From Macrostomum lignano (Eukaryota): a stretch of 64,000 nucleotides of DNA. The translations under genes and the position numbers were made by a program. This document shows positions 4,810 to 64,000 of this stretch, piece after piece. Below the pieces are notes generated by a model. That model had not been told where the DNA came from and made no database searches. It worked only from the letters and a program-made list of their open reading frames with translations. Each line of letters starts with the position of its first letter. Position 1 is the stretch's first letter. The stretch lies in assembly GCA_002269645.1 (NCBI GenBank), contig NIVC01000102.1, forward strand, positions 701,950 to 765,949, given 5' to 3'.

Positions 4810-5515
4810 CCTGCCCAACCTGTCTAAATAGATGTTTTACAAGTATAATTGGATCTTTCACCTGTCTAATTGGATGTTTCACCTGTCTAAATGGATGTTT
4901 CACCTGTCTAATTGGATGTTTCACCTGTCTAAGGAGATGTTTCACCTGTCTAATTAGATGTTTCACCTGTCTAATTAGATGTTTTACAAGTGTAATTGGA
5001 TCTTTAACCTGTCTAATTGGATGTTTCACCTGTCTAATTAGATGTTTCACCTATCTAATTGGATGTTTCACCTGTCTAATTTGATGTTTCACCTGTCTAA
5101 GGAGATGTTTCACCTGTCTAAGGAGATGTTTCACCTGTCTAAGGAGATGTTTCACCTGTCTAAGGAGATGTTTCACCTGTCTAAGGAGATGTTTCACCTG
5201 TCTAAGGAGATGTTTCACCTGTCTAATTAGATGTTTTACAAGTATAATTGGATCTTTCACCTGTCTAATTGGATGTTTCACCTGTCTAATTGGATGTTTC
5301 ACCACTCTAATTGGATGTTTCACCTGTCTAATTTGATGTTTCACCTGTCTAAGGAGATGTTTTACAAGTATAATTGGATCTTTTACCTGTCTAATTGGAT
5401 GTTTCACCTGTCTAATTGGATGTTTCACCTGTCTAATTAGATGTTTCACCTGTCTAATTGAATGTTTCACCTGTCTAATTAGATGTTTCACCTGTCTAAT
5501 TGGATGTTTCACTAG
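4810..5515. repeat. 21-bp minisatellite (GATGTTTCACCTGTCTAATTA/G)n, about 33 copies, in DCLK intron 3
   Basis: Seen directly; explains the 7-aa periodic ORFs in the track. Confidence 0.96.
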
Positions 5516-5925: not shown

Positions 5926-6024
5926 CCTAATATGTCCCCAAATTAGAAATTAGGCTCCTACACTCTGAACTCCCAACAAAGAGTAATTACTGTAATCCCT
6001 ACAAGGTATCAACTTGTCCCTTAC

Positions 6025-32660: not shown

Positions 32661-33225
32661 ACAGTGGACTTCGATTTTTGTATTTTCTCATGCGCTACTC
32701 CGTACTATTTTGAGTAGTGCATAAAAAATAACAAAATTCATTATACTGAGTACACAAATATGAAATTAATTGCTAATAGGGAATAGTCTGATTGCTAAGT
32801 AAACTTATAGATTGCCGAAAAAAGATTTTTTTTGAATATCAGGATCAGAAGATCGAATCGTTATTTTTTCCAAATTATTTATCTCTAGCTGAGAAAAAGA
32901 CTATTGCACTATATAAAGGGATTTTTGCTCCTGATGAGTAAAAGAGTATTGCACAAGCTAGGGAAATTGTTGTACTAGATTGCTATTGGGGGAGGGGGAG
33001 GCTTGCCATCTGGGGAATGCTTGCTATGTGGGGAATGCTTGCTATCTGGGGAATGCTTGCTATCTGGGGAATGCTTGCTATGTGGGGAATGCTCACTATC
33101 TGGGGAATTTTAGCTACGAGCTATCTGGGGAATGCTTGCCATCTGGGGAATGTTTGCTTGGAGGGATATAATTGCTGAGATGTCAAGGCTTACGGAGGGA
33201 ATTGGAACAACTGCGTCCACAAATT

Positions 33226-43759: not shown

Positions 43760-44238
43760 GAGTATTAAGAATTCTCGGAATAAACAGACTGCCCTTTGCC
43801 GGATCCTGTCACTGTCACGACTGTTGCCTCAATCACATTCGGAAAGAGTTGCTTGATGATTAGCCTGGTGCCGTTACACAGCTTTGGGGAATTTAAATTG
43901 CGCAGTAGCATAACTGGTGCACCCACTTTTAACTGGAGGTTGTGCGATGGCGTTCCAGGAGGCTCTGGAGAGTTCAAGAACTCAATGGGAAACTCCACAG
44001 CATTGTCAGCAGTCATTGTTGTGTCAATTGACTTGTAGCTGTTGGTATTGCCAGGCATCTCCTTGAGCAGCTGGGAGTTGATACTATTAGCTGCGTAATT
44101 CCTGGGACACAAAATGGCTCTTCAGTCAATCAATGTCAGCCAGTCAATGTCAGAAAACATGTGCAGGTTCACGTAGACCTTTGGCTTAAGCTCCTGCACA
44201 GAAGATACGATTGTACCGAATGCAGCAATTGGTGACAG
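43760..44238 (-). mobile_element. Helitron PIF1 helicase remnant, 3' part (interrupted by the LTR element)
   Basis: YKSIDT...EFLNSPEPPGTPSHNLQLKVGAPVMLLRNLNSPKLCNGTRLIIKQL. Confidence 0.9.
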
Positions 44239-45095
44239 TGTAGAGTGTTCTACCTCCCGTTAAAAAAAGGTTAAAAGAAGATAATCGTATAATGCTACTA
44301 TAAGTAAGTAAGTACACGCATGTGCGCCTAAGCTTTGAATGAATCAAGCTAACAGAAAAATATGTTACCAGAATAATACGCCATGAGCCATTTTCCCCTT
44401 TTAGCGCAACACGAGAATTGTAATGATGCTATTTTGGATCAAAAACTTGCCTATAAATACAAGCGATCTGAAGCGGTATCGGAGCCATTCTCCCCACGGA
44501 AGAGGAGCGCTCCGAAGAGGAAGCCTTAGGAGGACTTCCTGATATACCAAGTCAATCGAGACTCGGTCGAGTTGTTGCGGTAAGCCTTCCTTATTTGCGC
44601 CGTTGTGTTAGAGACGTCTCGCTCAAGTCTATTGAGACTTGAGTCCATTTGAGTCTGTTGAGACTCCTGAGTCTGTTTAGACTCCATTGGTTGCAGTCTC
44701 CAGAAGGACTGCCCCTGATAGATCTTAGAGGACTATCAGTGGTTTCCGGAGCTATACCTAGAGTGCATAGAGGCACTGCTAGAAGAAGGAGGCTTAACTT
44801 AGACCGCAGTTTGGCGCAGGGATCCCATTGTTAATTCGGAAGCTTCCCATTGGTCCGAGCGACAGAATCCGGCCGGAACTATTTGAGGAAGAAAGAAGAA
44901 TCGGACCCGATCTACAAACGAAAGTCAGAAGTGACTATACGAGAACAACTGAAGACAATCGAGAACTACTCCGAGAGATCTCCAAAGGACTCAAGGTAAT
45001 TGAATACCTTCTGTTGACTTACTGGGTTGCCTAGCTGCTGAGCTAGCAGTGATTGTTCCTTGATTATCGAAAGTCGGGTAATAAGGAACACATCA
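44239..45095 (+). repeat. 5' LTR (857 bp)
   Basis: TGTAGAG...ACATCA; TATAAATA at 44452; nearly identical to 53960-54815. Confidence 0.97.
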
Positions 45096-45097
45096 AT

Positions 45098-45108
45098 TGG
45101 TGATCTCG
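45098..45108 (+). promoter_or_regulatory. Primer-binding site, probably tRNA-Trp
   Basis: TGGTGATCTCG 2 nt after the LTR; pairs with the canonical tRNA-Trp 3' end (PBS TGGTGACCCCG) using two G-U pairs. The tRNA identity is inferred. Confidence 0.6.
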
Positions 45109-45809
45109 CCCTCTCGGCACTACTCAAACTTTGAGCAATAGCCTGGCCAAGCTATTGTACAGTGACGAAAGAGCGACTTTATTAATTTTGCGCGCACGTG
45201 TTAGAGTTAACACTTTTCAAGTCCGTACGTTTTGAAACTCGAGTAAATTTTGGTGTACAGGTTTGAGCACCTGTCAATTTTGAGTACAGTTTGAGCACGC
45301 GTGTAAATTTTTGTTTTAACGAGCTCGAGCAAGTGTGAGTTTAAAATAAACCGAAATTAAATTCATCGGTACACTGAAAACAAACCGAAAATAAAAGAAT
45401 CGTCGACGCAAAACAAACAAAAAAATAACGGAAACATTTTGCCGGCACAAAAACTAAAACAAAACCGAAATTAATTGAAACTTCGTGAAGAGCGGAGTTA
45501 ATTGACAAAAAAAGGAAAGTCAAAGAAGAGAAAAAAGCCTTTGCAAAGCAAGAAGACAAAGTCCACTTCAACTTGAAGATACACTTTGCGGGACGCCGCA
45601 TAAGTGCGAAATCAGCAAGCGAACAGAACAAGTTCATTTGAGGACAACCAGTGGCAGCAAGCCACACTGCATTCGAAGCCAGCGAATAACAAATCGACAC
45701 CACAAGACAATTCGTTACAGTTGAGGTTTATTCCGAGGCAAACACCACACTGGACGATCCGTTACAAATCGATCCAGATCTTGAACTACCGTTCTACCCT
45801 ATCAACAAC

Positions 45810-46220
45810 ATGGCGCGGCGCAATCCAACGGTACACAGAGACATCAAAGAAACGGTCGGTACTTTCTCGATGGAGAAAGATTTTAACACATTTGTCGACC
45901 ATTTTGACCTGGTATGTAGGGAATACAACCTACAAAATCCAGAAAAGGCACAGCTGCTGCCACCTCTTCTCCAAGGTACTGCGCGAGAAATTTACGGCAA
46001 GCTGGATGCAGCAACACAGCAAAATTATCCAGCACTAATCATTCAACTGCGCGCGCATTTCAACCGTTGCGGCACAAACAGATCAGTGCTGCTGCACAAG
46101 TTACATAACAGAAGGATGCAAGCAACGGAATCCTTCCTCGCCTTTGTGGACGATATCCGCCAGATAATTAAGGCACTGCATCAGCCACCGCTGCAAGCTG
46201 CGGATCAGCAGCGGAGTTAG
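45810..46220 (+). CDS. gag: Gag N-terminal (capsid-like) part; frame breaks to the long ORF near 46172-46220
   Basis: First ATG after the LTR; FSMEKDFNTFVDHFDLVC...LQGTAREIY...RRMQATESFLAFVDDIRQII is a retrotransposon Gag pattern. Confidence 0.8.
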   Translation: MARRNPTVHRDIKETVGTFSMEKDFNTFVDHFDLVCREYNLQNPEKAQLLPPLLQGTAREIYGKLDAATQQNYPALIIQLRAHFNRCGTNRSVLLHKLHNRRMQATESFLAFVDDIRQIIKALHQPPLQAADQQRS

Positions 46221-49200
46221 CCGCAAGAGAGCGACAACGATTGATGGACCGTGAACAAAACCTCATCCAACACGTAATAAACAATGCACAGCCGTCACTG
46301 CGGGATAGACTTTTGCGCGAGAACATTGAAACCGAGGAAGACCTTTTACGGTGCGGAATGCAGTGGGAAGCAAGCGCTCCACTAATGACAACCGGCAACA
46401 ATGAAGTGCAGAAACTGACACAGCAACTAAACAAGCTGATGCAACATCAAACAGCCGTTATCGCCGAACAAAAAAGACGAAACGAACAAGCCTCAGCCAG
46501 ATGTTACTACTGCGGACAAGAAGGACATTACCAGATTAATTGTCCTCATTGGTCAACAAGATACGACAAGCCACGACAGATATTCAACAATCAGAAGCCG
46601 CAGAAACCATGGCAGCAATATCAAAATCGCCAACAACAAGGCATAAGACGCTTCGGAAATGATAGACGCTTCGGAAATAATGACCGCTCCGGAAATGATG
46701 GCCGCTTCGGAAACGAAGGCCGCTTCAGAAATAATGGCTACAGGCCACGCAACGCCAGGTACGCACAAAGACAGCCAACGCAAGCAATGCCACGATACGC
46801 GAATGCCATCACGTACACACCGGAAAATGAGCAGCAGGAACAGCAAGTGTTCACAATTGACGACTTGGAAATGGACTTCACAGTCCCGGAACTTGACATC
46901 AGCTTGATCGAAAAGAAGACGACGCACGAGGACAACACTGACAACACAGAAGAGGCGAATGAAACCGAAATGATCGAATTAAAAGAGACCACCGGAGACA
47001 GCAGAGAAAACAGGAAGAAAGTAAATCACAAGAAAAGGGAGGAGACGGAGAGCGACACCGGCAACGAAGAAAAGATGAAGACTGGCAGAGAGAACAACTA
47101 TGAATCGACAACAGTGGATGACGACAAAACAAGCACAAAAGACAAAGAAATGAAGGAAGAAGAAGAATGTATAAGTTACGGCAACGATCACGACTGCGAG
47201 GTGCATGATGACACGAACGGATACCGAGCCGAAGAAGGAATGCAGGAAGAACTGAGAGCGGAAAATCTAAGCTCCGACAGCGATCAAGGCTACGAGGTAC
47301 AATGGAAAGATGAAGAAATGGAAAAAGAACAAATGAAAGAAAAGCCGAGTTCCGACAGCGACGAATGCTACGAGATCCGATACAAACGAAATGGTGAAGC
47401 CTATATTCAAACGGTCGACTACAAGGCAGAGAAAAGATACCAAACGCAATGGAGTGAAACAACGGAAACATCGGAAGAAGCTGCAGACGAAGATACTGAC
47501 ATAACCAAAGAGCAAAGCAAATCAGAAGCCTTCCACCTGAATCAGCCAATGGAACAACCGAAAGAATACGATGCGGACATGGAGGATAACGAATGGCAAT
47601 CGCAGCCAATGCCAGCAAAGACAACGGCAAGGTCCAAGAAGTGGAAAAACTGGCTATACTGGATCATCGTGATACTACTGATAGCAGTAGTCGCCAAAGC
47701 AACGGCAACGGAAAAGCCAATGATTTGTCCAACGGATGCGCATATCCAACCGATGATCTACAAGATACCAACCGACATCAAATGCAGCTACTTCAAGACA
47801 AACCAGACGAAGCCAAAGAAGATTACACTCGATCTCTACAAGGCTAACATCAAGAAGCATCGACAACATGGAATAGTGTGCTTCAGAGACAAGCACCTGG
47901 TGGAAAAAGTTTGGCGCGGACAATGGAACCGGATCCGATTTAAACAACATGAACTACATGTGTCACACGCGGAATGCCTACAATGGAACCAAACACTGTT
48001 TTCAAAGGATGGTGAACTGGAACCAGATGAGAAGGTCGGCAACGCACAGCTGTTCAGAACAAAGAATTCAGCCAACGGTCGATACATTCACTTCTTCGGA
48101 AAATGGAAAGAATATATGGCACGCAACAGCTACTTGATCAGAAATATTCCATTCTACCACAATCCTTTTGAAAAAATGGAGTCGCTACAACTGCAATTAA
48201 GCGACTGCCGATACAGCAAAGGATGGTGTCCAACGCCGATACTGCGGAATGAGGAACTATACAGCTTACCGTTGAGTCCAACATATCATCAAGACTATCG
48301 ATGGCAAATTATACGCAGAGGCGACTCACGATATGAAGAACCATCTAAGTCACGACAATACTTCTTCGCGTGGGAAGTTGAGCCGGAAATTGACTGCAAG
48401 CTTCAAAAGTATCACACAGTTGAAAGAGGTCTACTGTCAAATACGTTTTTGGCAAAGTCAGGAGACTTGGCCTTGACGTTTCAAAAGAAGCCGGTTGAAC
48501 AGGAACTCAAATGCAAGGATACGGACAAGACGCTATTCATCTCGGAGCAAGAAATACCAGTCTATGTAAAGGATGACGACAAGCGAACCTTCCTGACGAT
48601 CATAAACGGAACGTATCAACAACAAGAAAGGCAACGACGCGACATCGAACGTCCCAAACTGGTGTCAAACCGACTACTGTCAGCAAAGATAACGGCTTTG
48701 GATCACAATCTACACAACCAGTTAAACCACTTGCATCGAACACTGGTACAGCTAACTTGCAAAATGCACGCAATCAACTTAAATTATGCCAGACAAAACT
48801 ACTATGTCAACCCTACGATGACTTTTCGTAAAATCACCGGAATGACGAACGTTTTGGCAGTTCCAATATACGAGCATCTGTTGATATACAAGTGCACGCC
48901 GATACAGCACTTCAACATCTTGCCGTCAAACACGTCAACAACCTGCTACGATAAGCCAAGGATTGAAGCGTTCTACGAAGGAAAACGAATTCAAGGATTC
49001 TTGGACACGGTACACAACATCATCGTTGGCACCGCAATACCGAGACCTTGCACCACGGCAGCAAACTACTATCAACTGGACAATGCACTACACGTCATCA
49101 AAACAACTGGAACGACAGCAAACATCACAGAACCGGAAGTAATCGTCGACGAAAACTACGACATGGAGGATTTGAAGATCCGATTCAACAGAACGAAGTA

Positions 49201-52200
49201 TACGCCATTCGCCGATATCCAACTTGACGAGATAACACCAGGATGGACGATCAACGACTTCTTGCAAGCGTTCATCACCCAACGCAAGATGATTCACCAG
49301 CTGTTCACAAGAAAGGACAAAGGAACCGGGACAGGAAGATTTCCCGTCCTTGTTTCAATGGACAGCGCCATCAAATCATTTTGGACAAACAGCTTCTGGG
49401 AGCTGCTCAATGGAAGAGGCAGCCTATATCAAGGCTTCATCTTCTACAGCGCCTGCGTTGTTTGGATAGTCACGGCGATCTTTATCATCTCGTCGATAGT
49501 ACGATGCTTCAACAACACTTGTCCCACAGCGAAACGAACAGTGAACGCCATCATGCAGAAGATACCAAGGGAAGAAGACAACAACTTGGAATTGACAGAG
49601 GATACACGTCAAGAAACTCAAGGACAGCCGACACCAGCAACGCGGCTATATCCATCGATTCCGACAACACCAACAGCACCGAGAATGCAGCCACCTACAT
49701 ATCAGCCCGAACAACACGAGCCAAAATGGCCGGAAAACTACGTCTGTACGCTACACGCCGAGATTGGCAAAGCAATGGCTCAGGTCATTGTCAACAACTT
49801 GCCATGTCGAGCACTACTGGATTCAGGCAGCTCAATCACAGTCATCTCGCAACAATTATGCAACAAGCTACGACTCGCGGTACGACCAGCAGCAATCGCA
49901 GTTGCAGGAGCAGGAGGACATTCGCTCAACATCCTAGGAAAAGCAGATATTGACTTGAAAATTGCTAATAAACAGCTGACGGTCCCGACGTACATCATCG
50001 ACAGACTACCAAACCAAGACGTCATCGTTGGAATAGACACGTTCAAACAGCTTCGACTACCATTGACCTTCGACTTCAACAAGCAAACGTTTAGGATCGA
50101 CACGGTGGAGCAACCACTGATCAATCAGATTCGAGTACTACCGAAAGTAACTCTGCAGCAAGATGTCATCATCCAGCCTGAAAGCGCATGTTGGGTCAGA
50201 GCGAAAGCGACCAGCGCGGCAGATGAAGCAATGATATTTGATCCGCACAGGAGAGTCACGGCGAAACATCAAATCATGATGCCTACGGCACTAGTGCTGG
50301 TTGCAAAAGATAAACAGCTGCCAGTACAAATCTTCAACCCGAACGCGGAAATGGTTCATCTACGACAAGGAATGTGCATCGGTCATCTCAACACTCAGGC
50401 ATCGGTTATGCTGATTGAGCACGCGACTCCACGAATAACGGAGGAAGAGTTCCAAAAGAAAATCAACCTGGACGACAGCCCGATTACGGAACAACAAAAG
50501 AAGAAAGTTCGACAACTGTTGTGGAAGTACAACGAAGCCTTCTACCATCATGATTACGACATCGGACGAGCTAAAGACATTAAACAGGAAATCAAGCTTC
50601 TACCGCACACGGAACCAATTCAGTGCAAGCCGTACCCGATCGCCAAGCATCTGCAACAACACTTTGACGAAATCATCGATAAAATGCTAAAGCACGGCAT
50701 CATCAGCAAAGCTATTTCGGCTTACTCCTCACCGTGCCTACTGGTACAAAAGAAGGAGACTAACGAAAGACGACTCGTATGCGACTTCAGACTGTTGAAC
50801 AAGTACATACCGACGGATCAGCAAAGCCTGCCGAAGATCTCCGAACTATTAGCGAAGCTCAACACGGCAAAACTGTTCACGGTATTCGACCTACGTCATG
50901 GATTTTGGCAAATAGAAATCGACAAGGAATCGCGCCAGTACACAGCTTTCAAGACCTACAATGGACAAGTCTACGAGTACAATCGATCGCCGATGGGACT
51001 TAGCAACAGCCCAGCAACGATGAGCCGACTGACAGCATACATGCTTGCAGGATGCACGAACCTGCTGCACTATGTCGACGACATTTTGGCCTATGGAGAG
51101 GATTTCGAGCGACTCTACGAAGCTACGGAGAAGGCCCTGGCGCTCATTCAACGCCAAGGTCTTAAGCTGCAACCGACGAAATGCAAATTCTTCCGAGACA
51201 ACGTGCGTTACCTAGGACACCAAGTGACAGCCAGAGGAATTTCACCGGACCCAGACAACGTGGAAAAGGTGAAGAAGTTTCCTACGCCAACCAGTATAAC
51301 GAAGGTCCAATCATTCCTTGGACTTGCGCAATACTTCAGGAAGTTCTTACCTAACTTCGCAAAGACAGCAAAGCCACTGTACGACCTGCTCAAGTTCGAC
51401 AAATGGAAGCAAGACAACTGGACACAAAGACAACAAGAAAGTTTCGACGAAATTAAACGACAGCTGACATCAGACAAACTGCTACAGCATCCAGACTTCG
51501 ACAAGCCCTTCATCATCGAGACAGACGCCTCAGGAACGGGACTCGGAGCAGTCCTACTACAGGAAACCGAGGACAAGAAGGAACGACCTATTGCCTACGT
51601 CAGTCGAGCACTCAAACCAAATGAGACAAAGTGGTCAGCTACGGAACGAGAGCTACTAGGAGTCTTGTTCGCCCTGCGACAGTTTCATTACTACATCTAT
51701 GGTTCTCCAATACAGACGATAGTACGCACGGATCATGCACCATTGACCTACGTCGTAACTACAAAAGGACAGACCAACAACCGACTTATCAGGATGACAC
51801 TCAAGATCCAGGATTACAACTACAAACTCGTCTACAAACCAGGAATTACCAACAAAGCCGCGGACGCCCTGTCAAGAGCCTATGAAGTCAACGCCATTCA
51901 TCCAATCCCTAACATCAAGGAGTTGGTGGATGAAACCGAGCGCAACAACTTCTACCAAGCGGTTAAAGACGACGACAAGAACATCAAACTCAGTCCCATG
52001 GAACGAAAATTCCTACGCAAGCAACGACAACACCTAACAATCAATAAGTCACGGCTCTACTGGATGAGCGACAATAAACCTAAGATCTACGTACCATATT
52101 CGTTTCGGCAAGCAATTCTCAACGAGCTGCACGACAACCCACTCGCTGGACACCTGTCGGCCGCAAAGACCATCGCGAGAGTGGAACAATACTACTTTTG

Positions 52201-53284
52201 GCCAACTATGTATGGCGACATCAAGCAGTATTGCAACAACTGCCATTCATGTGCTGCATCAAAGACAGGACGACGACAGAAACCGCAGCTACAGTCCATC
52301 CCGAAGTCGACTACAATGGACTGTCTAAGCATCGACATCACCGGACCACTGCCACCGAGCTGTCTCCAGGGCATCGCCTACACCTACATCCTAACCGCCT
52401 TGGACATCTTCTCGAAGTTTGCTATTGCCATACCGATACCGGACATCACAGCTCAGACAATAGCAATGAGTTTCTACAATGAAATCATTTGCAAGTACGG
52501 CACGCCGAAGAACCTCACCTCGGACAACGGATCGCAGTTTACGTCTCAACTATTTCAGCAAGTTGTGAAGATTCTCAACATTACGCAGATCTACACATCG
52601 ACCTACAATCCGAAGGCAAACATGGTTGAACGGTTTCACCGCAACCTGCACGAGATGATTACACATTTCGCGCACCAACAGCCGGAAGACTGGATCATCT
52701 ACCTGCAATCTGTAACAATGGCCTACAACAGCGCTATTCATCGATCAACGGACAATACGCCATTCTTCCTAATGTTTGGACGAGACTTCCAACCGCCGAA
52801 TCTGCTCGCACAGCAATTACTACCATCGCAGTACGTGGAAGTACCGACTTCCATTCAGAAATTCGTCACGCAACTACACCTCGCATGGAAGATCGCTAAG
52901 CACAACATTGACAACCAGGTGGCTCTGACCACCGGCAACGACGCGAGATCGACAACCCTGACGGCCGGCGACATCGTTTACCTACACTACCCGCCACAGC
53001 AGACGCATAAACACGCGCAGAAGTACAAAGGACCGTATCGAGTGGTCCAACTAACTTCACCGACAACGGCGCGTTTGGCTAATGTGCAAGATCCTCACCA
53101 ACATCAGTTCTACGTGCACATCCATCGACTAAAAAAGATTAACACGGACACGGCAACATTTCTGCCGTCACTGGACAACGCGGATCGCACGCGTTCAACG
53201 AACCGCCACATCGCGACGAAGCACGAGGAGACTCAAACGACAGAGGTGAGCCAGCCACATGGCTACAACCTACGACCACGCTAA
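46172..53284 (+). CDS. pol: Gag C-terminus (CCHC) - Env-like glycoprotein - protease - RT - RNase H - integrase polyprotein
   Basis: Frame is open from 46172. CX2CX4HX4C at 46502-46543; hydrophobic signal 47651-47707; RQRR 48629-48640; TM about 49436-49501; DSG 49820; YVDD 51071; ETDAS about 51518; HHCC and DDE integrase with GPY near 53030. Confidence 0.95.
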   Translation, partial: GTASATAASCGSAAELAARERQRLMDREQNLIQHVINNAQPSLRDRLLRENIETEEDLLRCGMQWEASAPLMTTGNNEVQKLTQQLNKLMQHQTAVIAEQKRRNEQASARCYYCGQEGHYQINCPHWSTRYDKPRQIFNNQKPQKPWQQYQNRQQQGIRRFGNDRRFGNNDRSGNDGRFGNEGRFRNNGYRPRNARYAQRQPTQAMPRYANAITYTPENEQQEQQVFTIDDLEMDFTVPELDISLIEKKTTHEDNTDNTEEANETEMIELKETTGDSRENRKKVNHKKREETESDTGNEEKMKTGRENNYESTTVDDDKTSTKDKEMKEEEECISYGNDHDCEVHDDTNGYRAEEGMQEELRAENLSSDSDQGYEVQWKDEEMEKEQMKEKPSSDSDECYEIRYKRNGEAYIQTVDYKAEKRYQTQWSETTETSEEAADEDTDITKEQSKSEAFHLNQPMEQPKEYDADMEDNEWQSQPMPAKTTARSKKWKNWLYWIIVILLIAVVAKATATEKPMICPTDAHIQPMIYKIPTDIKCSYFKTNQTKPKKITLDLYKANIKKHRQHGIVCFRDKHLVEKVWRGQWNRIRFKQHELHVSHAECLQWNQTLFSKDGELEPDEKVGNAQLFRTKNSANGRYIHFFGKWKEYMARNSYLIRNIPFYHNPFEKMESLQLQLSDCRYSKGWCPTPILRNEELYSLPLSPTYHQDYRWQIIRRGDSRYEEPSKSRQYFFAWEVEPEIDCKLQKYHTVERGLLSNTFLAKSGDLALTFQKKPVEQELKCKDTDKTLFISEQEIPVYVKDDDKRTFLTIINGTYQQQERQRRDIERPKLVSNRLLSAKITALDHNLHNQLNHLHRTLVQLTCKMHAINLNYARQNYYVNPTMTFRKITGMTNVLAVPIYEHLLIYKCTPIQHFNILPSNTSTTCYDKPRIEAFYEGKRIQGFLDTVHNIIVGTAIPRPCTTAANYYQLDNALHVIKTTGTTANITEPEVIVDENYDMEDLKIRFNRTKYTPFADIQLDEITPGWTINDFLQAFITQRKMIHQLFTRKDKGTGTGRFPVLVSMDSAIKSFWTNSFWELLNGRGSLYQGFIFYSACVVWIVTAIFIISSIVRCFNNTCPTAKRTVNAIMQKIPREEDNNLELTEDTRQETQGQPTPATRLYPSIPTTPTAPRMQPPTYQPEQHEPKWPENYVCTLHAEIGKAMAQVIVNNLPCRALLDSGSSITVISQQLCNKLRLAVRPAAIAVAGAGGHSLNILGKADIDLKIANKQLTVPTYIIDRLPNQDVIVGIDTFKQLRLPLTFDFNKQTFRIDTVEQPLINQIRVLPKVTLQQDVIIQPESACWVRAKATSAADEAMIFDPHRRVTAKHQIMMPTALVLVAKDKQLPVQIFNPNAEMVHLRQGMCIGHLNTQASVMLIEHATPRITEEEFQKKINLDDSPITEQQKKKVRQLLWKYNEAFYHHDYDIGRAKDIKQEIKLLPHTEPIQCKPYPIAKHLQQHFDEIIDKMLKHGIISKAISAYSSPCLLVQKKETNERRLVCDFRLLNKYIPTDQQSLPKISELLAKLNTAKLFTVFDLRHGFWQIEIDKESRQYTAFKTYNGQVYEYNRSPMGLSNSPATMSRLTAYMLAGCTNLLHYVDDILAYGEDFERLYEATEKALALIQRQGLKLQPTKCKFFRDNVRYLGHQVTARGISPDPDNVEKVKKFPTPTSITKVQSFLGLAQYFRKFLPNFAKTAKPLYDLLKFDKWKQDNWTQRQQESFDEIKRQLTSDKLLQHPDFDKPFIIETDASGTGLGAVLLQETEDKKERPIAYVSRALKPNETKWSATERELLGVLFALRQFHYYIYGSPIQTIVRTDHAPLTYVVTTKGQTNNRLIRMTLKIQDYNYKLVYKPGITNKAADALSRAYEVNAIHPIPNIKELVDETERNNFYQAVKDDDKNIKLSPMERKFLRKQRQHLTINKSRLYWMSDNKPKIYVPYSFRQAILNELHDNPLAGHLSAAKTIARVEQYYFWPTMYGDIKQYCNNCHSCAASKTGRRQKPQLQSIPKSTTMDCLSIDITGPLPPSCLQGIAYTYILTALDIFSKFAIAIPIPDITAQTIAMSFYNEIICKYGTPKNLTSDNGSQFTSQLFQQVVKILNITQIYTSTYNPKANMVERFHRNLHEMITHFAHQQPEDWIIYLQSVTMAYNSAIHRSTDNTPFFLMFGRDFQPPNLLAQQLLPSQYVEVPTSIQKFVTQLHLAWKIAKHNIDNQVALTTGNDARSTTLTAGDIVYLHYPPQQTHKHAQKYKGPYRVVQLTSPTTARLANVQDPHQHQFYVHIHRLKKINTDTATFLPSLDNADRTRSTNRHIATKHEETQTTEVSQPHGYNLRPR

Positions 53285-53404
53285 AGTTTCGAGAACAACC
53301 CCGTGTAGTGACCGGGATAAAGAATAGCACTACAGCTTCGCAAGCTTGTCGTAAAAGGCGACTAATCCGAGCGACACAAAGACAGCGACAAATTGACGAC
53401 AATT

Positions 53405-53779
53405 ATGGGCAACGCACTGTCGAAACAGGCGCCCCAGCCTCAGCAGCTATATGACTGCCCGATATGTTTAACTGATGACTTGGCTGTCAAGCCACCGACT
53501 ATTTGCATCAACGAACATAAAGTTTGCGGACAATGTTTAAGCGATTCACATTATATTCAGCCATGGCAGAATTGTCCCCTCTGTAGAGATAGTTTGCGAC
53601 AATGCGCCTATTGTTATTCTTGGCGCACGTTTCAATATTGTAACCACCAACATTTTATTTGCATGCACTGTTTGAAGCAAACCGCTAGTAGGGGCGTTAT
53701 AGGATGCCCCTTATGTAATAGTATGCCGCGAGACTGCACGTTTCGAAAGTGGTGTCGGATCAAACCTGATGCCACTTGA
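53405..53779 (+). CDS. Accessory ORF: N-myristoylation motif plus two RING-type zinc fingers (124 aa)
   Basis: ATG at 53405 gives MGNALSK; CPIC-x12-C-x3-H-x2-C-x2-C-x12-CPLC and CAYC-x8-C-x3-H-x2-C-x2-C-x11-CPLC. Confidence 0.8.
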   Translation: MGNALSKQAPQPQQLYDCPICLTDDLAVKPPTICINEHKVCGQCLSDSHYIQPWQNCPLCRDSLRQCAYCYSWRTFQYCNHQHFICMHCLKQTASRGVIGCPLCNSMPRDCTFRKWCRIKPDAT

Positions 53780-53944
53780 TGTCTACGCGATATTCGAGTT
53801 TTGACCGCAATATGTACTGAAAAGTTTTTAGAGTTTTGACCAAACCCTCGCTTCACTAGACGCGCACAAAATCAATTGTTTATTTCCTATATTAACTGAT
53901 CACCACAGAATTTTATTGTTAAAACTCGGGACGAGTTTTTTCGT

Positions 53945-53956
53945 AAAAAAGGGAGA
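53945..53956 (+). promoter_or_regulatory. Polypurine tract
   Basis: AAAAAAGGGAGA 3 nt before the 3' LTR. Confidence 0.85.
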
Positions 53957-53959
53957 TTT

Positions 53960-54815
53960 TGTAGAGTGTTCTACCTCCCGTTAAAAAAAGGTTAAAAGAA
54001 GATAATCGTATAATGCTACTATAAGTAAGTAAGTACACGCATGTGCGCCTAAGCTTTGAATGAATCAAGCTAACAGAAAAATATGTTACCAGAATAATAC
54101 GCCATGAGCCATTTTCCCCTTTTAGCGCAACACGAGAATTGTAATGATGCTATTTTGGATCAAAAACTTGCCTATAAATACAAGCGATCTGAAGCGGTAT
54201 CGGAGCCATTCTCCCCACGGAAGAGGAGCGCTCCGAAGAGGAAGCCTTAGGAGGACTTCCTGATATACCAAGTCAATCGAGACTCGGTCGAGTTGTTGCG
54301 GTAAGCCTTCCTTATTTGCGCCGTTGTGTTAGAGACGTCTCGCTCAAGTCTATTGAGACTTGAGTCCATTTGAGTCTGTTGAGACTCCTGAGTCTGTTTA
54401 GACTCCATTGGTTGCAGTCTCCAGAAGGACTGCCCCTGATAGATCTTAGAGGACTATCAGTGGTTTCCGGAGCTATACCTAGAGTGCATAGAGGCACTGC
54501 TAGAAGAAGGAGGCTTAACTTAGACCGCAGTTTGGCGCAGGGATCCCATTGTTAATTCGGAAGCTTCCCATTGGTCCGAGCGACAGAATCCGGCCGGAAC
54601 TATTTGAAGAAGAAAGAAGAATCGGACCCGATCTACAAACGAAAGTCAGAAGTGACTATACGAGAACAACTGAAGACAATCGAGAACTACTCCGAGAGAT
54701 CTCCAAAGGACTCAAGGTAATTGAATACCTTCTGTTGACTTACTGGGTTGCCTAGCTGCTGAGCTAGCAGTGATTGTTCCTTGATTATCGAAGTCGGGTA
54801 ATAAGGAACACATCA
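53960..54815 (+). repeat. 3' LTR (856 bp)
   Basis: Matches the 5' LTR; followed by ACAG. Confidence 0.97.
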
Positions 54816-55810
54816 ACAGCCCCTCCTCAGCACTGACCTCCAAGAGATTAATAGAAAATTGATGAGAAGTTTCATCGCCATAAACTGCAGTCCTCATGTT
54901 GATTCGCATGTGGAGCTTTTCATCTGATGGCCACAGATGCAAAGATGAGGCATGCATTTAGTCTCATCTGCTGGGTTGCCACGCGAAATTACGGCCAACG
55001 TCTGTCTAAAGTCTGCGGAGAGCAGCAGGGTGACACCACCCATGAGCTGGTTGTTGCCGCGCAGATACTTTAGCGTCAGGCTGAGTGCTTCAAAAGCCAG
55101 TTTGTGGGACATGGTACATTCATCCCAGACAATAAGCTTGCAGGCTTGCAACACTCTGACAGTGCCACTGTTCTTCTTGATGTTGCAAGGTAGTTTTTCA
55201 GCTCTTGACAGATCAAATGGCAATTTTAGTGTTGAGTGAGCAGTGCGACCACCTGGAAGTAGCGTGGCTGTGATTCCAGAGGAAGCGGCAGCAACTGCAA
55301 TCTCGCCTCCATGTCTAATCTTTGACAGAAGGAGTTTGATCAGTAAATTTTTTCCTGTCCCCCTGGAGCATCCTAGAAAAGTATTCCTCCTACATTGTTA
55401 TTCACTCTTTGCAGTACCTCTTGGTACGCTTCTGCCTGCTTAGGTAAAAGACGGGGTTCATTTTCCTCAATGAACTGACAAAGCTGCTCGCGGTCAAAGC
55501 TGGTTTCTCGCAGCATCTTCCTACTCAAATTCTCTTGTCGATGCTTCTCGGCTGTCGGACGTCCAAACATGTTCAATTGGGACGATCCGTCTCGTCTCGT
55601 CTCGTTATGGCAGACGAGATAAGTTTTGTTCGCCCATCATGCTTCAGTCAGCTTCTTTTCGGATCTTGGGCGCCGAAACCGCGTACGTCATAGACGTAGC
55701 TGCAGGCCATATCAATGTCATGATGCTTTTATGTCGATGGGCATTGAAACGTCACCGTCGAGGTCCTCAGGCCCGTCTGAACGCATGTCTGGCCCCGCAA
55801 CTTGACATCC
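54816..55810 (-). mobile_element. Helitron PIF1 helicase remnant, 5' part
   Basis: MLRETSFDREQLCQFIEENEPRLL, DAPGGTGK (Walker A) and IVWDE (Walker B); joins 44238 across the LTR insertion. Confidence 0.9.
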
Positions 55811-56659: not shown

Positions 56660-58900
56660 AAACATAAAAAAGCACAATGTCAAACATAAAAGAGGCACCA
56701 TGTCAAACATTACATGGGCACCATTTAAAACATATACGTGACTCTATGTCAAACATTAAAGAGCCACCATGTAAAACATAAAAGAGTCACCATTTCGAAC
56801 ATTAAAGAGCCACCATGTCAAACATTAAAGAGCCACTATGTCGAACATTAAAGAGCCACCATGTCGAACATTAAAGAGCCACCATTTCGAACATAAAAGA
56901 GCCACCATTTCGAATATTAAAGAGCCACCATGAAGAAAATTAAAGAATCACCATATCGAACATAAAACAGCCACAATGTAGAATATTAAAGAGCCACTAT
57001 GTCGAACATTAAAAAGCCACAGTGTCAAACGCTAAAGAGCCACTATTTCGAACATTAAAGAGCCACCATGTCAAACATAAAAGAGCCACCATGTCGAACA
57101 TTAAAGAGCCACCATGTCGAACATTGAAGAGCCACCATTTAGAATATTAAAGAGCCACCATGTCAAACATTAAAGAGCCACTATGTCAAACGTAAAAGTG
57201 ACCAAGATGCTTGCTATTTGGGGATACTTGCTATCTGGGGGATGCTTGCTATCTGGGGGATGCTTGCTATCTGGGATGCTTGCTATCTGGAGGATGCTTG
57301 CTATCTGGGGGATGCTTGCTATCTGGGGGATGCTTGCTATCTGGGGGGTACTTGCTATCTGGGGGATGCTTGTTATCTGGGGGATGCTTGCTATCTGGGG
57401 GATGCTTGCTATCTGGGGGGTGCTTGTTATCTGGGGGATGCTTGCTATCTGGGGGGTGCTTGCTATCTGGGTGATGCTTGCTATCTGGGGGATGCTTTCT
57501 CTCTGGGTGATGCTTGCTGTCTTGGGATGATTTCTTTTTGCATTGCACTTCATTTGAGCAGTTTGTCGGTTTTCTTTGTGAAGGTTTTTTTGTATGTCGA
57601 ATATTAAACAGCCACCATGTCAAACATAAAAGAGACACCATGTCAAACATAAAAGAGCAACCATGTCGAACATTAAAGAGCCAGCATGTCAAACATTAAA
57701 GAGCCACCATGACAAACATTAAAGAGCCACCATGTCAAACATTAAAGAGCCACCACGTCAAACATTAAAGAGCCACCATGTCGAACATTTAAGAGCCACT
57801 ATGTCAAACATTAAAGAGCCATCATGTCAAAAATTAAAGAGCCACCACGTCAAACATTAAAGAGCCACCATGTCGAACATAAAAAGAGCCACTATGTCAA
57901 ACAAACACGTGACTTCATGTCAAATATTAAAGAGCCACCATGTGAAACATACACGTGACTCCATCTCAAACATTAAAGAGCCACTATTTCAAACATAAAA
58001 GAGCTACCATGTCAGACATAAAAGAGCTACCATGTCAAATATACAAAAGCCATCATGTCAAACATAAAACAGCCACATATACGTGACTTAATGTCAAACC
58101 TTAAGGAGCCACCATGTCAAACATTAAAGAGCCACCATGTCGAACATTAAAGAGCTACCATCTCAAACATAAAAGAGTCACCATGCCAAACATAAAAGAG
58201 CCACCATGTCAAACATAAAAGAGCCACCATTTTAAACATATACGTGACTCCATGTCAAACATTAAAGCGCCATCATGTCAAACATATATGTGACTGCATG
58301 CCAAACATAAAAGAGCCACCATGTCAAACATAAAAGAGCCACCATGGCGAACATTAAAGAGCCACCATGTCAAACATAGAAGAGACACCATGTCAAACAT
58401 AAAGAGCCACCATGTAAAATATAAAAGAGCTACTATGTAAAATATAAAAGGGCCATCATGTCAAACATTTACGTGACTCAATGTCAAACATTAAAGAGCC
58501 ACCATATCGAACATTAAAGAGCCACCATATCGAACATTAAAGAGCCACCATGTTAAACATAAAAGAGCCACCATGCCAGACATAAAAGAGCCACCATGTC
58601 AAACATATACGTGACTCCATGTCAAACATTAAAGCGCCATCATGTCAAACATATATGTGACTGCATGTCAAACATAAAAGAGCCACCATGTCAAACAACT
58701 AAGCCACCATGTCAAACAAAGAAGAGACACCATATCAAACATAGAAGAGCCACCATGTCAAACATAACAGAGACAACATTTCAAACGTAAAAGGGCCGCC
58801 ATGGTAAACATAAAAGAGCCACTATGTCAACATTAAAGAGCCACCTTTTTAAACATAAAAGAGACACCGTTTCAAACATAAAAGAAGTGTCATGCCAAAC
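56660..58900. repeat. 23-bp satellite (TAAAGAGCCACCATGTCAAACAT)n, interrupted at about 57205-57600 by the G-rich 18-mer array
   Basis: Period of 23 seen directly (57061, 57084). Confidence 0.95.
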
Positions 58901-58949: not shown

Positions 58950-59450
58950 TCTAGTGGATGCTTGCTATTTAAGGATGGATACTTGCTATCAAGGGGATGC
59001 TTGCTATTGGGAGATGCTTGCTCTTGGGGGGTGGAGGGTACTTGCTATCTAAGAGGGGGTTGCTAGATATCTATAAGGTCTCTTTGTATCCAGGTTAATG
59101 CTTGCTATTTGGGGTTGCTTGCGGTCTGGGGGATGCTTGCTCTTGGGGGGTGGAGGGTACTTGCTATCTAAGAGGGGGTTGCTAGATATCTATGAGGTCT
59201 CTTTGTATCCAGGTTAATGCTTGCTATCTGGGGGATGCTTGCTATCAGGGGTTGCTTGCAGTCTGGGGGATGCTTGCTATTTGGGGGATGCTTGCTATCT
59301 GGGGGATGCTTGTTATCTGGGGGATGCTTGCTATCAGGGGTTGCTTGCAGTCTGGGGGATGCTTGCTATCTGGGGTTGCTTGCTATCGAGGGTTGCTTGC
59401 TATCGGGGGGATGCTTGCTATCTGGGGGATGCTTGCTGTCTTGGGATGTT
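58950..59450. repeat. G-rich (GGGGGATGCTTGCTATCT)-family array
   Basis: Seen directly. Confidence 0.92.
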
Positions 59451-59568: not shown

Positions 59569-60194
59569 TCCAATATACTAAAAATGAAAATCTTGCTTGT
59601 TTGTTTGTACGCAATCGATTAGAGAAAAAATGGCTGGACCGATTTTCATGAGACTTGCACTGTTCGATCAGAAATTTTCCCGTGACAGTACATGCATCGT
59701 GGCTAAGAAATTGCTTGATGCTAAAGGCATTAAATATTCGAAAAACATGCTTTTTTGCAAACGTCAAGCAAACTTTTCGACTTGAAATGCATTGTAAGAA
59801 TGCTAGAGAAAAAATTGACTGGTTGATTCTGATTCTGAAATAGATTGCATCATAACTGAATTGTAACTCCAACTTGAATTGCGTCGCAGTATTGAAAATG
59901 CAGTGTGGAAGCGTAGCACCAGACGTGATTTAGATTGCGTAACCATATTCTCAACATTAATTGAGACTGATGCTGACTTGCCTGGGAAATTGATTATGTC
60001 ATAACTGCTTCGTGAGTGAGTGTTGAATTATATGAGTGCTACAATTTCAATTATAAATTCGATAAGATCTAGCCTAGATGTGAACAGACTGGACTGCTAA
60101 TGCAGCGACCTGGCTTCGAATCTTAGTAGCGAAAATTTTTTTATTAAAAGCTTTTATTCAAAAAATAATAAAGGACTAAAGGCGTAATGTAAAG

Positions 60195-61300
60195 AATCAT
60201 AGAATTGTCATGCAAAAAATCATAGAAGCGTCATGTAAACAATCCTAGAAGCGTCATGTAAACAGTCATAGAAGCGTCATGAAACAATCATAGAAGCGTT
60301 ATGTAAAATCATAGAATCGTCCTGCAAAAATCGTACCGGTAGAAGCGTCATGTAAAAATCATAGAAGCGTTATGTAAAAATCATAGAAGCGTCATGTAAA
60401 AATCATAGAAGCGTCATGTAAAAATCATAGAAGCGTCATGAAACATCATAGAAGCGTCATGTAAAAATCATAGAAGCGTCATGTAAACAATCCTAGAAGC
60501 GTCATGCAAACAATCATAGAAGCGTCATGTAAAAAATCATAGAAGCGTCATGTAAAAAATCATAGAAGCGTCATGTAAAAAATCATAGAAGCGTCATGTA
60601 AAAAATCATAAAAGCGTCATGTAAAAATCATAGTAGCGTCATGTAAAAATCATAGAAGCGTTATGTAAAAATGATAGAAGCGTCATATAAAAAATCATAG
60701 AAGCGTCATGTAAAAATCATAGAAGCGTTATGTAAAAATCATAGAAGCGTCATGTAAACAGTCATAGAAGCGTCATGAAACAATCATAGAAGCGTCATGA
60801 AACAATCATAGAAGCGTCATGTAAAAATCATAGAAGCGTCATGTAAACAATCATAGAAGCGTCATGTAAACAATCATAGAAGCGTCATGTAAACAATTAT
60901 AGAAGCGTCATGTAAACAATCATAGAAGCGTCATGTAAAAAATCATAGAAGCGTCATGTAAACAATCATAGAAGCGTCATGAAACAATCATAGAAGCGTC
61001 ATGTAAACAATCCTAGAAGCGTCATGTAAACAATCATAGAAGCGTCATGTAAAAAATCATAGAAGCGTCATGTAAAAAATCATAGAAGCGTCATGTAAAC
61101 AATTATAGAAGCGTCATGTAAAAAATCATAAAAGCGTCATGTAAAAATCATAGAAGCGTCATGAAACAATCATAGAAGCGTCATGTAAAAATCATAGAAG
61201 CGTCATGTAAAAAATCATAGAAGCGTCATATAAAAATCATAGAAGCCTCATTTAAAAACTAAAGAAAGTGTCATTTAAAAAATTAAGAAGCATCATGGTA
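60195..61300. repeat. 22-23-bp satellite (ATCATAGAAGCGTCATGTAAAA)n
   Basis: Seen directly. Confidence 0.96.
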
Positions 61301-63054
61301 GAATAAAAGAAGCGTCATATCAGACATGAAAGGTGTCATGTAAAAATTAAATGAAGCTATAGTGCTGTGCTAGGGAGAAAAACTGAGACGTCAAGGCTCA
61401 CAGAGAATAACTGAGATTTTGGGGGCGTTTCTGAGATGTCAAAGCAACAGTCAGAAGCTACTTCAAAGTTCATTTACTTTACTCAATTTTTTTATTACAT
61501 TCTTTGTTGGCTCGGCCACGGGGGGCGCTGATAGAAGAAGAGTCATGTAAAAAATAAAAGTAGCACTATGTATACATAAAAGAAAAGTCATGTCGAAGTT
61601 AAAAGATTCATTTGGGAATTGCTACGATGTCAAAGCTTGGAGGGAATCGTTATAGTGCTGTGATTCTTAAAGAAAGAATCACTAAAATGTCAAGGCTTAG
61701 GGGAGAAGAATTGCTGAGATTCAAGGCTTTAGGTTGGGTTAAAGTTAGGTTAGGTTAGGTGTGGGTTGAGGGTTATATTTTATCGGGTTTCAAGGTTAAC
61801 GGGGGATTTTTCAGATTTCTAGGTTTATGGAGGCCATCGCTGACATGTCAAGGCTTACGGGGGGAATAGCTGAGATGTCAAGGCTCACGGGGGTATAAAT
61901 GAGATTTCAAAGCTAAAGTCAGAAGCTACATGTAGTTTATTGAAAACTTTTTATTACATTATTTGATGCCTCCTCAGGGGAGGGATCGCTGATAAAAAAG
62001 CGTAATGTAAAAAATAAAAGAAGCTTCATGTCGAAGTTAAGAGATTCATTTGGGAATCCATTGCATTGCTGAGATGTCAAGGGGGGAGTTGATATGTTAA
62101 AGCTTGTGGGGGGGATTACTGACATGTCAAGGCTTACAAGGTTTGACAGGAGATTTTTTAAGATTTCAAGGATACATGTAGCTTATTAAAAAAACGTGTA
62201 TTGCATTTCTTTGGCTCCCCAACGGGGGGCGTAGATTGCTAGTCTCAATCTATAATTTTATCTCCTACCTACCTAATTATGTATGTTGTTAAAGCCAAGT
62301 TGTAATCAATTGTGTTCAATCTTACCCTCCTTACCTGTGTACGTTGCAAAAACCAATATTTAATCAATCGTTTTCAATCTCACTTTCTCAAATCGTTCTA
62401 ATAAAATCCTGACGATGCACCATGGCGTGCGAAACGCGTTGGAGTTATTAGAAATTGCAATCATATTCAAATGTTGATAATAAGCTTTCTAGAGATGAGA
62501 AGAGAGATGAAAGAAAAGAGGGATGAGGGAAGATACGAGAGAAGAGGGGAGAGAGGAGAGAGGGAAAAAGAGAATTGAGATGAGAGGAGAGACGAGGGAC
62601 GAGAGAGAAGAGAGGAAACAGAAGAGAAGATAGAAGTTTCAAAGGATCCAAGGGACGTAGGGAGAGTCAGGAAGAGGCCAGAGTTTGCCAATACATGTTT
62701 TAGAGTCAGACAGACATTGCCTGACATTCTGTGCAGCACCCCAACTAACAATATCAAATGTTTGCCTCAAATACTAATTTTACACGAATGTAATTCATTT
62801 TATGTTTACCTCTATCCTACTAACTATTAACAAGTTTTTGTTTGAGTATGGCCTCAGATTTCCGAATACATGCAAAAATAGTTCCGGGGATTGGAATTCC
62901 CCGGGTCCAAAATCCGCTGGTTTCAACAGCTTGTATATATGTCCCCGTCCCCGTCCCTCGTCCACGTCCAGAGCGACTAGCAAGCGGAGTTTCTGCGTGA
63001 CTTAGCTTAATACACACTGCTTTACTTTATTTCTCTCTGCTCGAAATCTGTCAG

Positions 63055-63638
63055 AACTCAAAGCAAGCATGGGCACTAGAGAGCCAAATTTACCCGAGAC
63101 TCTCGAGCGGCCTGAAGTTGTTGTTCTTGATGATCTAGAGAGTAACTTTCCCGAAATCGACAACGTGGTAAAGACAGACGGAGTTCTTTCAGTCGGTATA
63201 AACTTCGACAAATTTGAGGCGACAGTTCTGGAGAAACATAAAACTGACAGTTTTGAAACGGCCTACGATACTCGAGGTAATCCTAGAGGTCTCTGTCTCA
63301 TCATTAACAATAAAAGTTTTGCTGGTAAACTCAAAGACAGAATCGGAACGGATGTTGACCGTGATAATTTGAGCAATCTGTTCAGCAAACTTCTGTACAA
63401 AGTGGAGATTGTCAACAACCAAACTGCCGAGGGAATGAAGGAAGCATGCAGGCGCTTCATTCTCAATCCGGAGCACGAACAGTACACCTCATGCGTCTTG
63501 GCGGTTCTGTCGCACGGCACAAATGGCAAAATACTGGGCTCGGACAGCAAGCCTGTGGACGAGTACAAGGACATCCTTTCGCTGTTTAACAATCCAGATT
63601 GCAGGCTAGCCGGTAAACCGAAGTTTGTCATCATTCAG
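63055..63638 (+). CDS. Caspase exon (large subunit through GKPKFVIIQ); gene presumably continues beyond the window
   Basis: PRGLCLIINN, DRIGTDVD, CVLAVLSHG (catalytic His) and GKPKFVIIQ|GTAAAT donor just before the expected ACRG. Pyrimidine-rich acceptor TCAG at 63054; ATG at 63069. Confidence 0.9.
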
Positions 63639-64000
63639 GTAAATATACATGCAGGACAAACTGTACATTACTTTAAAACAGCCAAAGCCTCGATGCATTT
63701 CGCGGTTTTGAAACTTCAAGGCTTACCTCGCTGAATATAATTCCTAAGACACAGTACATCTCTATTCTTATATTAAACCCCAAAAGACTAACGCAGAATA
63801 AAAGCAAGTGGCACAAAAGACCGGCAGACGCGGCCCAGAAAGGGAAAACGAACCCCTTAAGCGACGAAATATATTGATTTTGTAATTTAAAAGAGAAAAA
63901 AAAATATTTTGCCAAAATTACGCCGACTCAGCGGCCGCGACGCGTGACTAAATAGCACAGAGCGGGGGGGAGGCTGCCCTAAGCCCTGCACGCACGCAGA

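Follow-up and report, generated by a model that had tools for sequence, protein, structure and literature searches.

How might a glycoprotein that belongs on the luminal side of a membrane be expressed from the middle of a cytosolic polyprotein? The question is raised by a long terminal repeat (LTR) retroelement of 10,577 bp, at positions 44239-54815 of a 64,000-nucleotide stretch of the genome of the flatworm Macrostomum lignano (assembly GCA_002269645.1, contig NIVC01000102.1, positions 701,950 to 765,949 of the forward strand), the whole of which we refer to as the window. A preliminary description of this DNA had proposed that it carries a Gypsy element in which an envelope protein (Env) resembling herpesvirus glycoprotein B (gB) is fused in frame between Gag and the protease, and had suggested that the gag-env-pol order might be new. 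The first proposal held and the second did not. It seems to us probable that the element inserted recently and is one of multiple copies of a Ty3/gypsy endogenous retrovirus of M. lignano (an "errantivirus" in the wide sense), belonging to the published GAG-ENV-POL class with a gB-type Env, and expressed by a mechanism that we infer below.

On the plus strand, to which all positions refer unless stated otherwise, a frame without stops runs for 2370 codons from 46172 to a stop at 53282-53284, and contains an open reading frame (ORF) of 2347 amino acids beginning at 46241. The order within the element is capsid, CCHC knuckle, acidic linker, a first transmembrane-like stretch (TM1), ectodomain, a second such stretch (TM2), tail, protease (PR), reverse transcriptase (RT), RNase H (RH) and integrase (IN). 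ORF analysis, Pfam searches and hydropathy all confirmed the frame as previously described, with its CCHC knuckle, acidic linker, hydrophobic signal, Cys-rich segment, membrane span and PR-RT-RNase H-IN series; the strings quoted in that description were all located in the window, and the Env segment does come after the Gag knuckle and ahead of PR, in the same frame as both.

The frame is bounded by a 5' LTR of 857 nt (44239-45095) and a 3' LTR of 856 nt (53960-54815), direct repeats of one another that both have the form TG...CA and are identical but for a single mismatch and an indel of one base. Outside them stand the two copies of a target-site duplication, ACAG, at 44235-44238 and 54816-54819. 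Read from the sequence, a primer-binding-site-like TGG... stretch (45098-45110) lies 2 nt past the 5' LTR, and a polypurine-tract-like run (53945-53956) lies 3 nt upstream of the 3' LTR; a tRNA scan of the 64-kb window found zero tRNA genes to which the putative primer-binding site might be assigned. The segment 44239-54815 is a young Ty3/gypsy insertion, and a 7-kb open frame between near-identical LTRs of 857 and 856 nt is far beyond chance.

Env was delimited as 47609-49699 on the evidence of a gB profile, Foldseek and the Pfam family PF24664, and comprises its own conserved Met, a signal-like stretch, the ectodomain, TM2 and a tail; as no stop separates it from pol, the border at 49699/49700 is approximate. 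Across all 2370 codons, hydropathy analysis identified two TM-like stretches and no more. The first (47651-47695) is the hydrophobic core of the signal-like stretch, which also has a small-residue KATA site, and the second (49436-49501) is TM2, the predicted membrane anchor or stop-transfer sequence, for which the structural model described below has a helix at residues 599-630. Hydropathy and conservation point to a signal sequence with a single C-terminal anchor, which is a type I layout. Between the two stretches the ectodomain (47708-49435) spans 576 amino acids with 12 Cys, six N-x-S/T sequons and an RQRR furin-type site, numbers that on recounting agreed with those given before, and all 12 of the Cys residues are common to 92-100% of the aligned relatives. 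The Env relatives, 63 in number, were collected in an exhaustive HMMER scan of 1.84 billion representatives; exact look-ups of the window ORF and of proteins P0001 and P0068 returned nothing on record.

A profile built from the 47630-49699 piece and 29 relatives (profile A1) gave 50 matches in the PDB, every one of them to herpesvirus gB (best E 1.7e-13) in the region of domains III-IV. The AlphaFold model computed on the A1 alignment (mean predicted local distance difference test, pLDDT, 73.3) has beta-rich domains that flank a long helix, and a TM helix is present. When this model was compared with the PDB by Foldseek, gB of herpes simplex virus 1 (HSV-1), Epstein-Barr virus (EBV), Kaposi's sarcoma-associated herpesvirus (KSHV), human cytomegalovirus (HCMV), varicella-zoster virus (VZV), human herpesvirus 6B (HHV-6B) and pseudorabies virus (PRV) ranked first, with E from 5.7e-22 to 1e-18, a probability of 1.0 and 620-740 aligned columns. 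Comparison with the predicted viral structures of BFVD returned rhabdo-like, nyami-, orino- and chu-related glycoproteins, some entomopoxvirus ORFs and gB, with E from 1.2e-25 downwards, so that in fold Env is about as like the class III glycoproteins of RNA viruses as it is like gB. Given the profile and fold matches together, we assign the segment to the class III fusion glycoproteins of the gB/mononegaviral-G superfamily, with whose elongated architecture of five domains around a long central helix the model agrees. The gB-like Env of the preliminary description therefore withstood the AlphaFold and Foldseek check (class III fold, E 5.7e-22) as well as the profile search, and we regard the inserted segment as a class III, gB-type glycoprotein by profile and by model, with a predicted fusion activity.

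The model also places the smaller parts of Env. Its central, domain III-like helix of 46 residues (48671-48808; residues 348-393 of the modelled piece) has block-mean pLDDT values of 83-95, mostly above 90, and falls within the regions matched by both PF24664 and the gB profile. The stretch earlier likened by eye to the central helix of gB lies inside it, and the two motifs that followed in that comparison lie within the beta-rich domain after the helix. The RQRR site (48629-48640) ends where a low-confidence loop ahead of the central helix begins; its first Arg is common to 75% of the relatives and the remaining positions to fewer. Several gB proteins likewise have a furin-type site just ahead of the central helix. 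With regard to the two fusion loops that had been suggested, the first candidate (47906-47926) sits at a predicted hairpin tip between model strands 81-96 and 99-109, with columns 94-96 hydrophobic in 85% of the relatives and the tip aromatic or hydrophobic in most. The second (48086-48106), a loop ahead of model strand 160-172 whose adjoining columns are aromatic in 53-72% of the relatives, is less clear and is put forward more tentatively.

A gene order of this kind could in principle reflect a single insertion of the segment into one element or a chimeric assembly, an explanation for which we found no supporting point. Five more copies (L002-L006), on five contigs of GCA_002269645.1, are 88-94% identical to the window element and colinear with it along their own length, and all five contain env at about 100% cover; two of them, L003 and L005, are truncated where their contig ends. 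The closest proteins are from M. lignano, at 91-94% identity. A sister family in the same genome and more distant relatives, those of nematodes included, have the segment in the same order, and we regard a one-off insertion or a chimera as exceedingly improbable. The copies here stand at 88-94% identity (five besides that in the window), where the criterion used by Chary & Hayashi for copies was >98% identity.

The integrity of the frame differs from copy to copy. In the window, gag (45810-47608) comprises a capsid-like N-terminal part, the CCHC knuckle and a long acidic linker, and is broken once by a frameshift, with zero stops: its ATG is at 45810, the capsid-like piece lies in a different frame from the remaining gag, and the stop-free frame from 46172 begins within the gene. 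Because of this one frameshift, the window copy is unable to make full-length Gag from a single frame. Frame changes and stops were counted against the window proteins, each searched within a single frame and with env as cut in this analysis; the two gag parts were searched separately. The window copy and L002 each have one change in gag and none in env, at the gag/env junction or in pol. L003 has one change in env and none in gag, junction or pol, whereas L004 has one change in gag, four changes and two stops in env, one change at the junction and none in pol. L005 has two changes in gag, one in env and none at the junction or in pol, and L006 has a single change, in pol, with gag, env and the junction free of any.

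Given that the breaks sit in different genes in different copies, that the capsid part and the remaining gag share one frame in all five of the other copies, that L006 has gag, env and the start of pol in one frame, and that L002 has env and pol in one frame, we conclude that in the ground plan of the family a single frame extends all the way from the ATG of gag through IN. For the same two reasons, the varied position of the breaks and the common frame of both gag parts in five of five copies, a programmed frameshift in gag was ruled out. Some of the frame changes in the copies may be errors of long-read assembly.

The same plan is found uninterrupted in the sister family P0003 (L001:3204-11762), whose 8559 nt correspond to 2852 codons plus a stop and therefore to a gene without introns. 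Over 1612 colinear residues that extend from domain III of Env through IN, P0003 and the window frame have 31% identity. P0003 is one capsid-CCHC-TM-Env-TM-PR-RT-RH-IN ORF, in which the CCHC is found at residue 396, TM-like stretches span residues 658-677 and 1479-1511, and the protease motif and YxDD lie at 1632 and 2073 respectively. A single frame with the full order is the ground plan of both this family and its 31%-identical sister.

Among the 63 Env relatives, 24 have a CCHC ahead of Env in the same protein and 20 have PR after it, nine of those 20 continuing through IN; several of the relatives with PR after Env come from contigs too short for introns, and a Ty3-type Pol ahead of Env was found in none of the 63. 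Proteins of Globodera rostochiensis and Panagrolaimus superbus are included, with nematode Env identity at about 25%. Separately, we observed a BEL/Pao polyprotein (P0049, 2342 amino acids, from a Logan contig; Peptidase_A17, rve and DUF5641) whose ORF continues from Pol into a related Env; both orders, and two retroelement superfamilies, are thus represented for this kind of Env.

Selection was estimated by the Nei-Gojobori method, comparing the window with the copies over the longest single-frame alignment only. The ratio of nonsynonymous to synonymous substitution rates (dN/dS) was 0.07-0.11, about 0.08, for the Env ectodomain (dS 0.2-0.4, up to 576 codons), 0.04-0.05 for pol, 0-0.15 for gag and 0.05-0.15 for the linker. 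Env has been under strong purifying selection during the diversification of the family, as expected if the element needs Env to propagate.

These values bear on the idea that Env is no longer fusogenic and serves as a membrane anchor that brings Gag and Pol to internal membranes for intracellular retrotransposition, or that the host has co-opted it. Conservation of the furin-type site among the relatives is only partial, which would suit a protein that had given up fusion, but selection acts on the whole ectodomain, with all 12 Cys conserved, and the hydrophobic tip of the hairpin is conserved as well; moreover, the element in which Env resides is mobile and present in multiple copies, bounded by LTRs and a target duplication, and is not a fixed host locus. 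We consider a loss of fusogenicity or a co-option very improbable, and continue to read Env as the predicted fusion glycoprotein of an endogenous retrovirus.

The assignment of the element to Gypsy, also made previously, agrees with its pol, which follows env in frame and unbroken (49700-53284). Pfam places the aspartyl protease at 49775-50065 (residues 1202-1298 counted from 46172), RT (RVT_1) at 50747-51226 (residues 1526-1685), RNase H (RT_RNaseH) at 51419-51817 (residues 1750-1882) and the zinc and core domains of IN (Integrase_H2C2 plus rve) at 52091-52612 (residues 1974-2147). Both this PR-RT-RNase H-IN order and the best PDB matches, which are Ty3 Gag-Pol (7q5b, E 1.5e-95, RT through IN) and Ty3 RT (4ol8, E 4.4e-68), support the assignment. 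Membership of BEL/Pao, hinted at by a weak match to DUF1759, was ruled out, as Pol matches Ty3 and is without Peptidase_A17 and DUF5641, both of which are present in the true BEL/Pao relative P0049.

That DUF1759 match is the only one Pfam gives for the capsid-like part of gag. The N-terminal piece aligns with residues 165-278 of P0003 (E 2e-14), and the relative P0021 carries Ty3_capsid plus CCHC. In the window the knuckle (46502-46549; zf-CCHC at residues 111-126 counted from 46172) scores 21.8 bits (E 1.9e-4) against a cut-off of 20.8. Three further observations concern this region. The N-terminal 133 codons of gag are the most conserved part of the element, encoding a protein that is 100% identical in all five copies (dN 0, dS 0.07-0.10), while whole elements differ by 6-12%. 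On the coding strand, 46001-48000 (gag and acidic linker) has a very strong excess of A over T (AT skew 0.45). A minus-strand ORF of 243 amino acids (46899-47630) was set aside as probably a by-product of the A-rich, low-complexity composition of the linker.

If the single frame is translated as it stands, the genomic RNA would yield one membrane-threaded polyprotein. Gag and the linker would be made in the cytosol, and the internal signal-like stretch with its KATA site would then bring the nascent chain to the endoplasmic reticulum, where the ectodomain would be translocated, disulphide-bonded and glycosylated. TM2 would halt transfer and leave the tail and PR-RT-RH-IN back on the cytosolic side. 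On the luminal side signal peptidase would release the N-terminus of Env and a furin-type protease may cut at RQRR, with the element's own protease cutting on the cytosolic face. A polyprotein threaded in this way would deliver Gag and Pol to the membrane directly under Env, so that capsid, enzymes and envelope could be assembled at one membrane site from equimolar products. Equimolar products are also a feature of other single-ORF retroelements of the Tf1 type. By analogy with insect errantiviruses, Env might then serve passage from cell to cell, for example from soma to germ line.

On the other hand, Env, or Env-Pol, might be translated separately from the Met at 47609, by way of a spliced subgenomic RNA or internal initiation, in which case it would matter little that gag and env share a frame. 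Together with a basic stretch, the hydrophobic core and the KATA site, this Met makes up a textbook signal peptide that would stand at the N-terminus of Env; all four parts are kept in the other copies, and retroviruses and insect errantiviruses are established to make Env from spliced RNA. It is also consistent with this alternative that gB-type ectodomains lie either between a signal peptide and a TM or between two TMs (Chary & Hayashi, PMC13524379). However, no break interrupts the frame where gag passes into env in the window, in L003, in L006 or in the sister family, 24 relatives have CCHC and Env in one predicted protein, and purifying selection acts on the linker too (dN/dS 0.05-0.15). 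Furthermore, Pol follows Env in frame, so that Env-Pol at least would be a threaded fusion. Separate translation of Env thus seems to us unlikely, though less so than the other alternatives considered here.

Several points weigh against our preferred interpretation of the element as a GAG-ENV-POL retrovirus with a gB-type Env expressed from one frame. The threading, the cleavage sites and the fusion activity are all predictions, and the conserved Met ahead of the signal fits separate translation of Env equally well. A single ORF implies equimolar Gag, Env and Pol, and no signal that might regulate this was found. At least one frame change is present in each of the six copies examined (window and L002-L006), an uninterrupted frame being seen only in the sister family. 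With regard to the identity of Env, a single-sequence phmmer search of the 690-amino-acid piece (47630-49699) against the PDB gave chance matches only. Taken singly, the window Env scores with PF24664 (Monjiviricetes fusion glycoprotein) and not with the Pfam gB family, and it does so with 24.8 bits (E 6.6e-6), below the 27-bit cut-off, which is passed by its relatives P0008 (49.8 bits), P0018 (35.1 bits) and P0028 (30.6 bits). Finally, the TM-scores to gB are only 0.3-0.4, which is to be expected when an elongated protein of several domains is modelled as a monomer.

Between pol and the 3' LTR the element has a further ORF of 124 amino acids (53405-53779), which starts with Met-Gly, has a Ser at position 6 in the manner of a myristoylation site, and is Cys-rich and RING-like. 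Its product is 97-100% identical in four copies that are 94% identical overall, with dN/dS of about 0.1 in three of the four. Profile searches gave weak RING-finger matches only, a database search returned zero homologues, and a single-sequence AlphaFold model (pLDDT 35.6) was unusable. Judged by its sequence, this protein may serve the element in an accessory or matrix-like role.

A more speculative proposal, which we advance as a possibility and with some doubt, joins these elements: Gag-Env-Pol would be one membrane-threaded polyprotein of flavivirus-like topology, processed in the lumen by signal peptidase and furin of the host and in the cytosol by the retroviral protease, such that Gag would need no membrane-targeting signal, and the small 3' RING protein would have an accessory role, either matrix-like or directed at the host. 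To our knowledge, neither a threaded polyprotein of flavivirus-like form nor an accessory role for a 3' RING protein of the myristoylation type has been shown experimentally for any retroelement. Flavi-like polyproteins consist of a cytosolic capsid, an internal signal, a luminal glycoprotein, a stop-transfer span and cytosolic enzymes, and their processing is shared by host signal peptidase and a viral protease. The likeness to the element in the window is one of layout, as suggested by hydropathy, with no homology, and the element here is a reverse-transcribing one.

How, then, does this element relate to known systems? Errantiviruses of Nematoda, Bryozoa and Platyhelminthes have been reported to possess ENV solely of the HSV/gB type, in the order GAG-ENV-POL, and to fall into several non-monophyletic clades; their ectodomains may have two flanking TM domains, and the furin site is not always conserved (Chary & Hayashi, eLife 2026, preprint 2023, PMC13524379). 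The element of the window shares with this class the Ty3/gypsy pol, the gB-type Env between gag and pol, a flatworm host and multiple copies, similar here at 88-94% identity, together with two membrane spans around the ectodomain, a conserved Cys pattern and a furin site that is not always conserved. The suggestion that the order might be new is accordingly not supported. Neither a single continuous frame nor the topology of a polyprotein is discussed in the published text, from which the words polyprotein, in-frame and frameshift are absent, and Macrostomum is not named in the main text of this study of 1512 elements (PMC13524379).

The first such elements in nematodes are credited there to Sacco et al. 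2022 (J Gen Virol, doi 10.1099/jgv.0.001739), and the nematode endogenous retroviruses (NERVs) of that study, as cited in PMC13524379, share with ours a metavirus-type pol and a captured glycoprotein gene upstream of it. They differ in having nematode hosts and about 25% Env identity, with the Globodera and Panagrolaimus proteins mentioned above among the Env relatives. NERVs reportedly have a continuous gag-env-pro-pol ORF together with extra small ORFs.

An envelope within a single polyprotein also has a precedent in Atlas virus, a hookworm belpaovirus with one stop-free, intron-less polyprotein of 2828 amino acids that includes Env (Merchant et al. 2022, PMC9094657). It is likewise an endogenous LTR element, but its pol is of the BEL/Pao type, its order is Gag-Pol-Env and its Env is of the class II, phlebovirus Gn-Gc type. 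Given the class of Chary & Hayashi and the precedent of Atlas virus, neither the gene order nor the in-frame fusion of an envelope is new.

The resemblance to the insect errantiviruses gypsy and ZAM lies in the possession of env by a Ty3/gypsy element and in its likely role in passage between cells. In those insect elements Env is a class I (F-type) protein encoded 3' of pol and made from spliced RNA, and gag and pol are joined by a frameshift. With herpesvirus gB, Env shares profile homology at domains III-IV, the fold of the whole ectodomain and a type I topology, and its fold also matches the class III glycoproteins of Monjiviricetes; identity to gB and to the Monjiviricetes glycoproteins is, however, 10-14%, and here the protein is encoded within a retroelement polyprotein and not by a separate viral gene.

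The neighbours of the element in the window are probably animal host genes. A minus-strand ORF at 5950-7707 has a protein-kinase domain (Pkinase, E 4e-38) and is probably a host exon in a GC-rich tract (63.6% GC in 6001-8000), and a plus-strand ORF at 63069-63734 has a caspase domain (Peptidase_C14, E 4e-28) and is probably a host exon too. Many tandem arrays of short period (14-24 nt) are scattered through the window, at 292-1259, 1781-2438, 4818-5512, 25590-26946, 56661-58885, 60182-61318 and elsewhere, and one related unit of 18-21 nt recurs at 25590-26946, 32994-33158, 57206-57526 and 59217-59445.

The published picture of envelope capture by retroelements is left unchanged by these results. 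What they add is a well-preserved Macrostomum member with evidence on its frame and on selection, as well as a small 3' ORF, and hence a clean example of the recently described GAG-ENV-POL class that is also young and almost without breaks, found in a laboratory flatworm. They also provide quantitative support for the view that env is selected as strongly as pol and that two diverged families have a single frame as their ground plan, and they make the question of how a luminal glycoprotein is expressed from the middle of a cytosolic polyprotein testable in a tractable animal.

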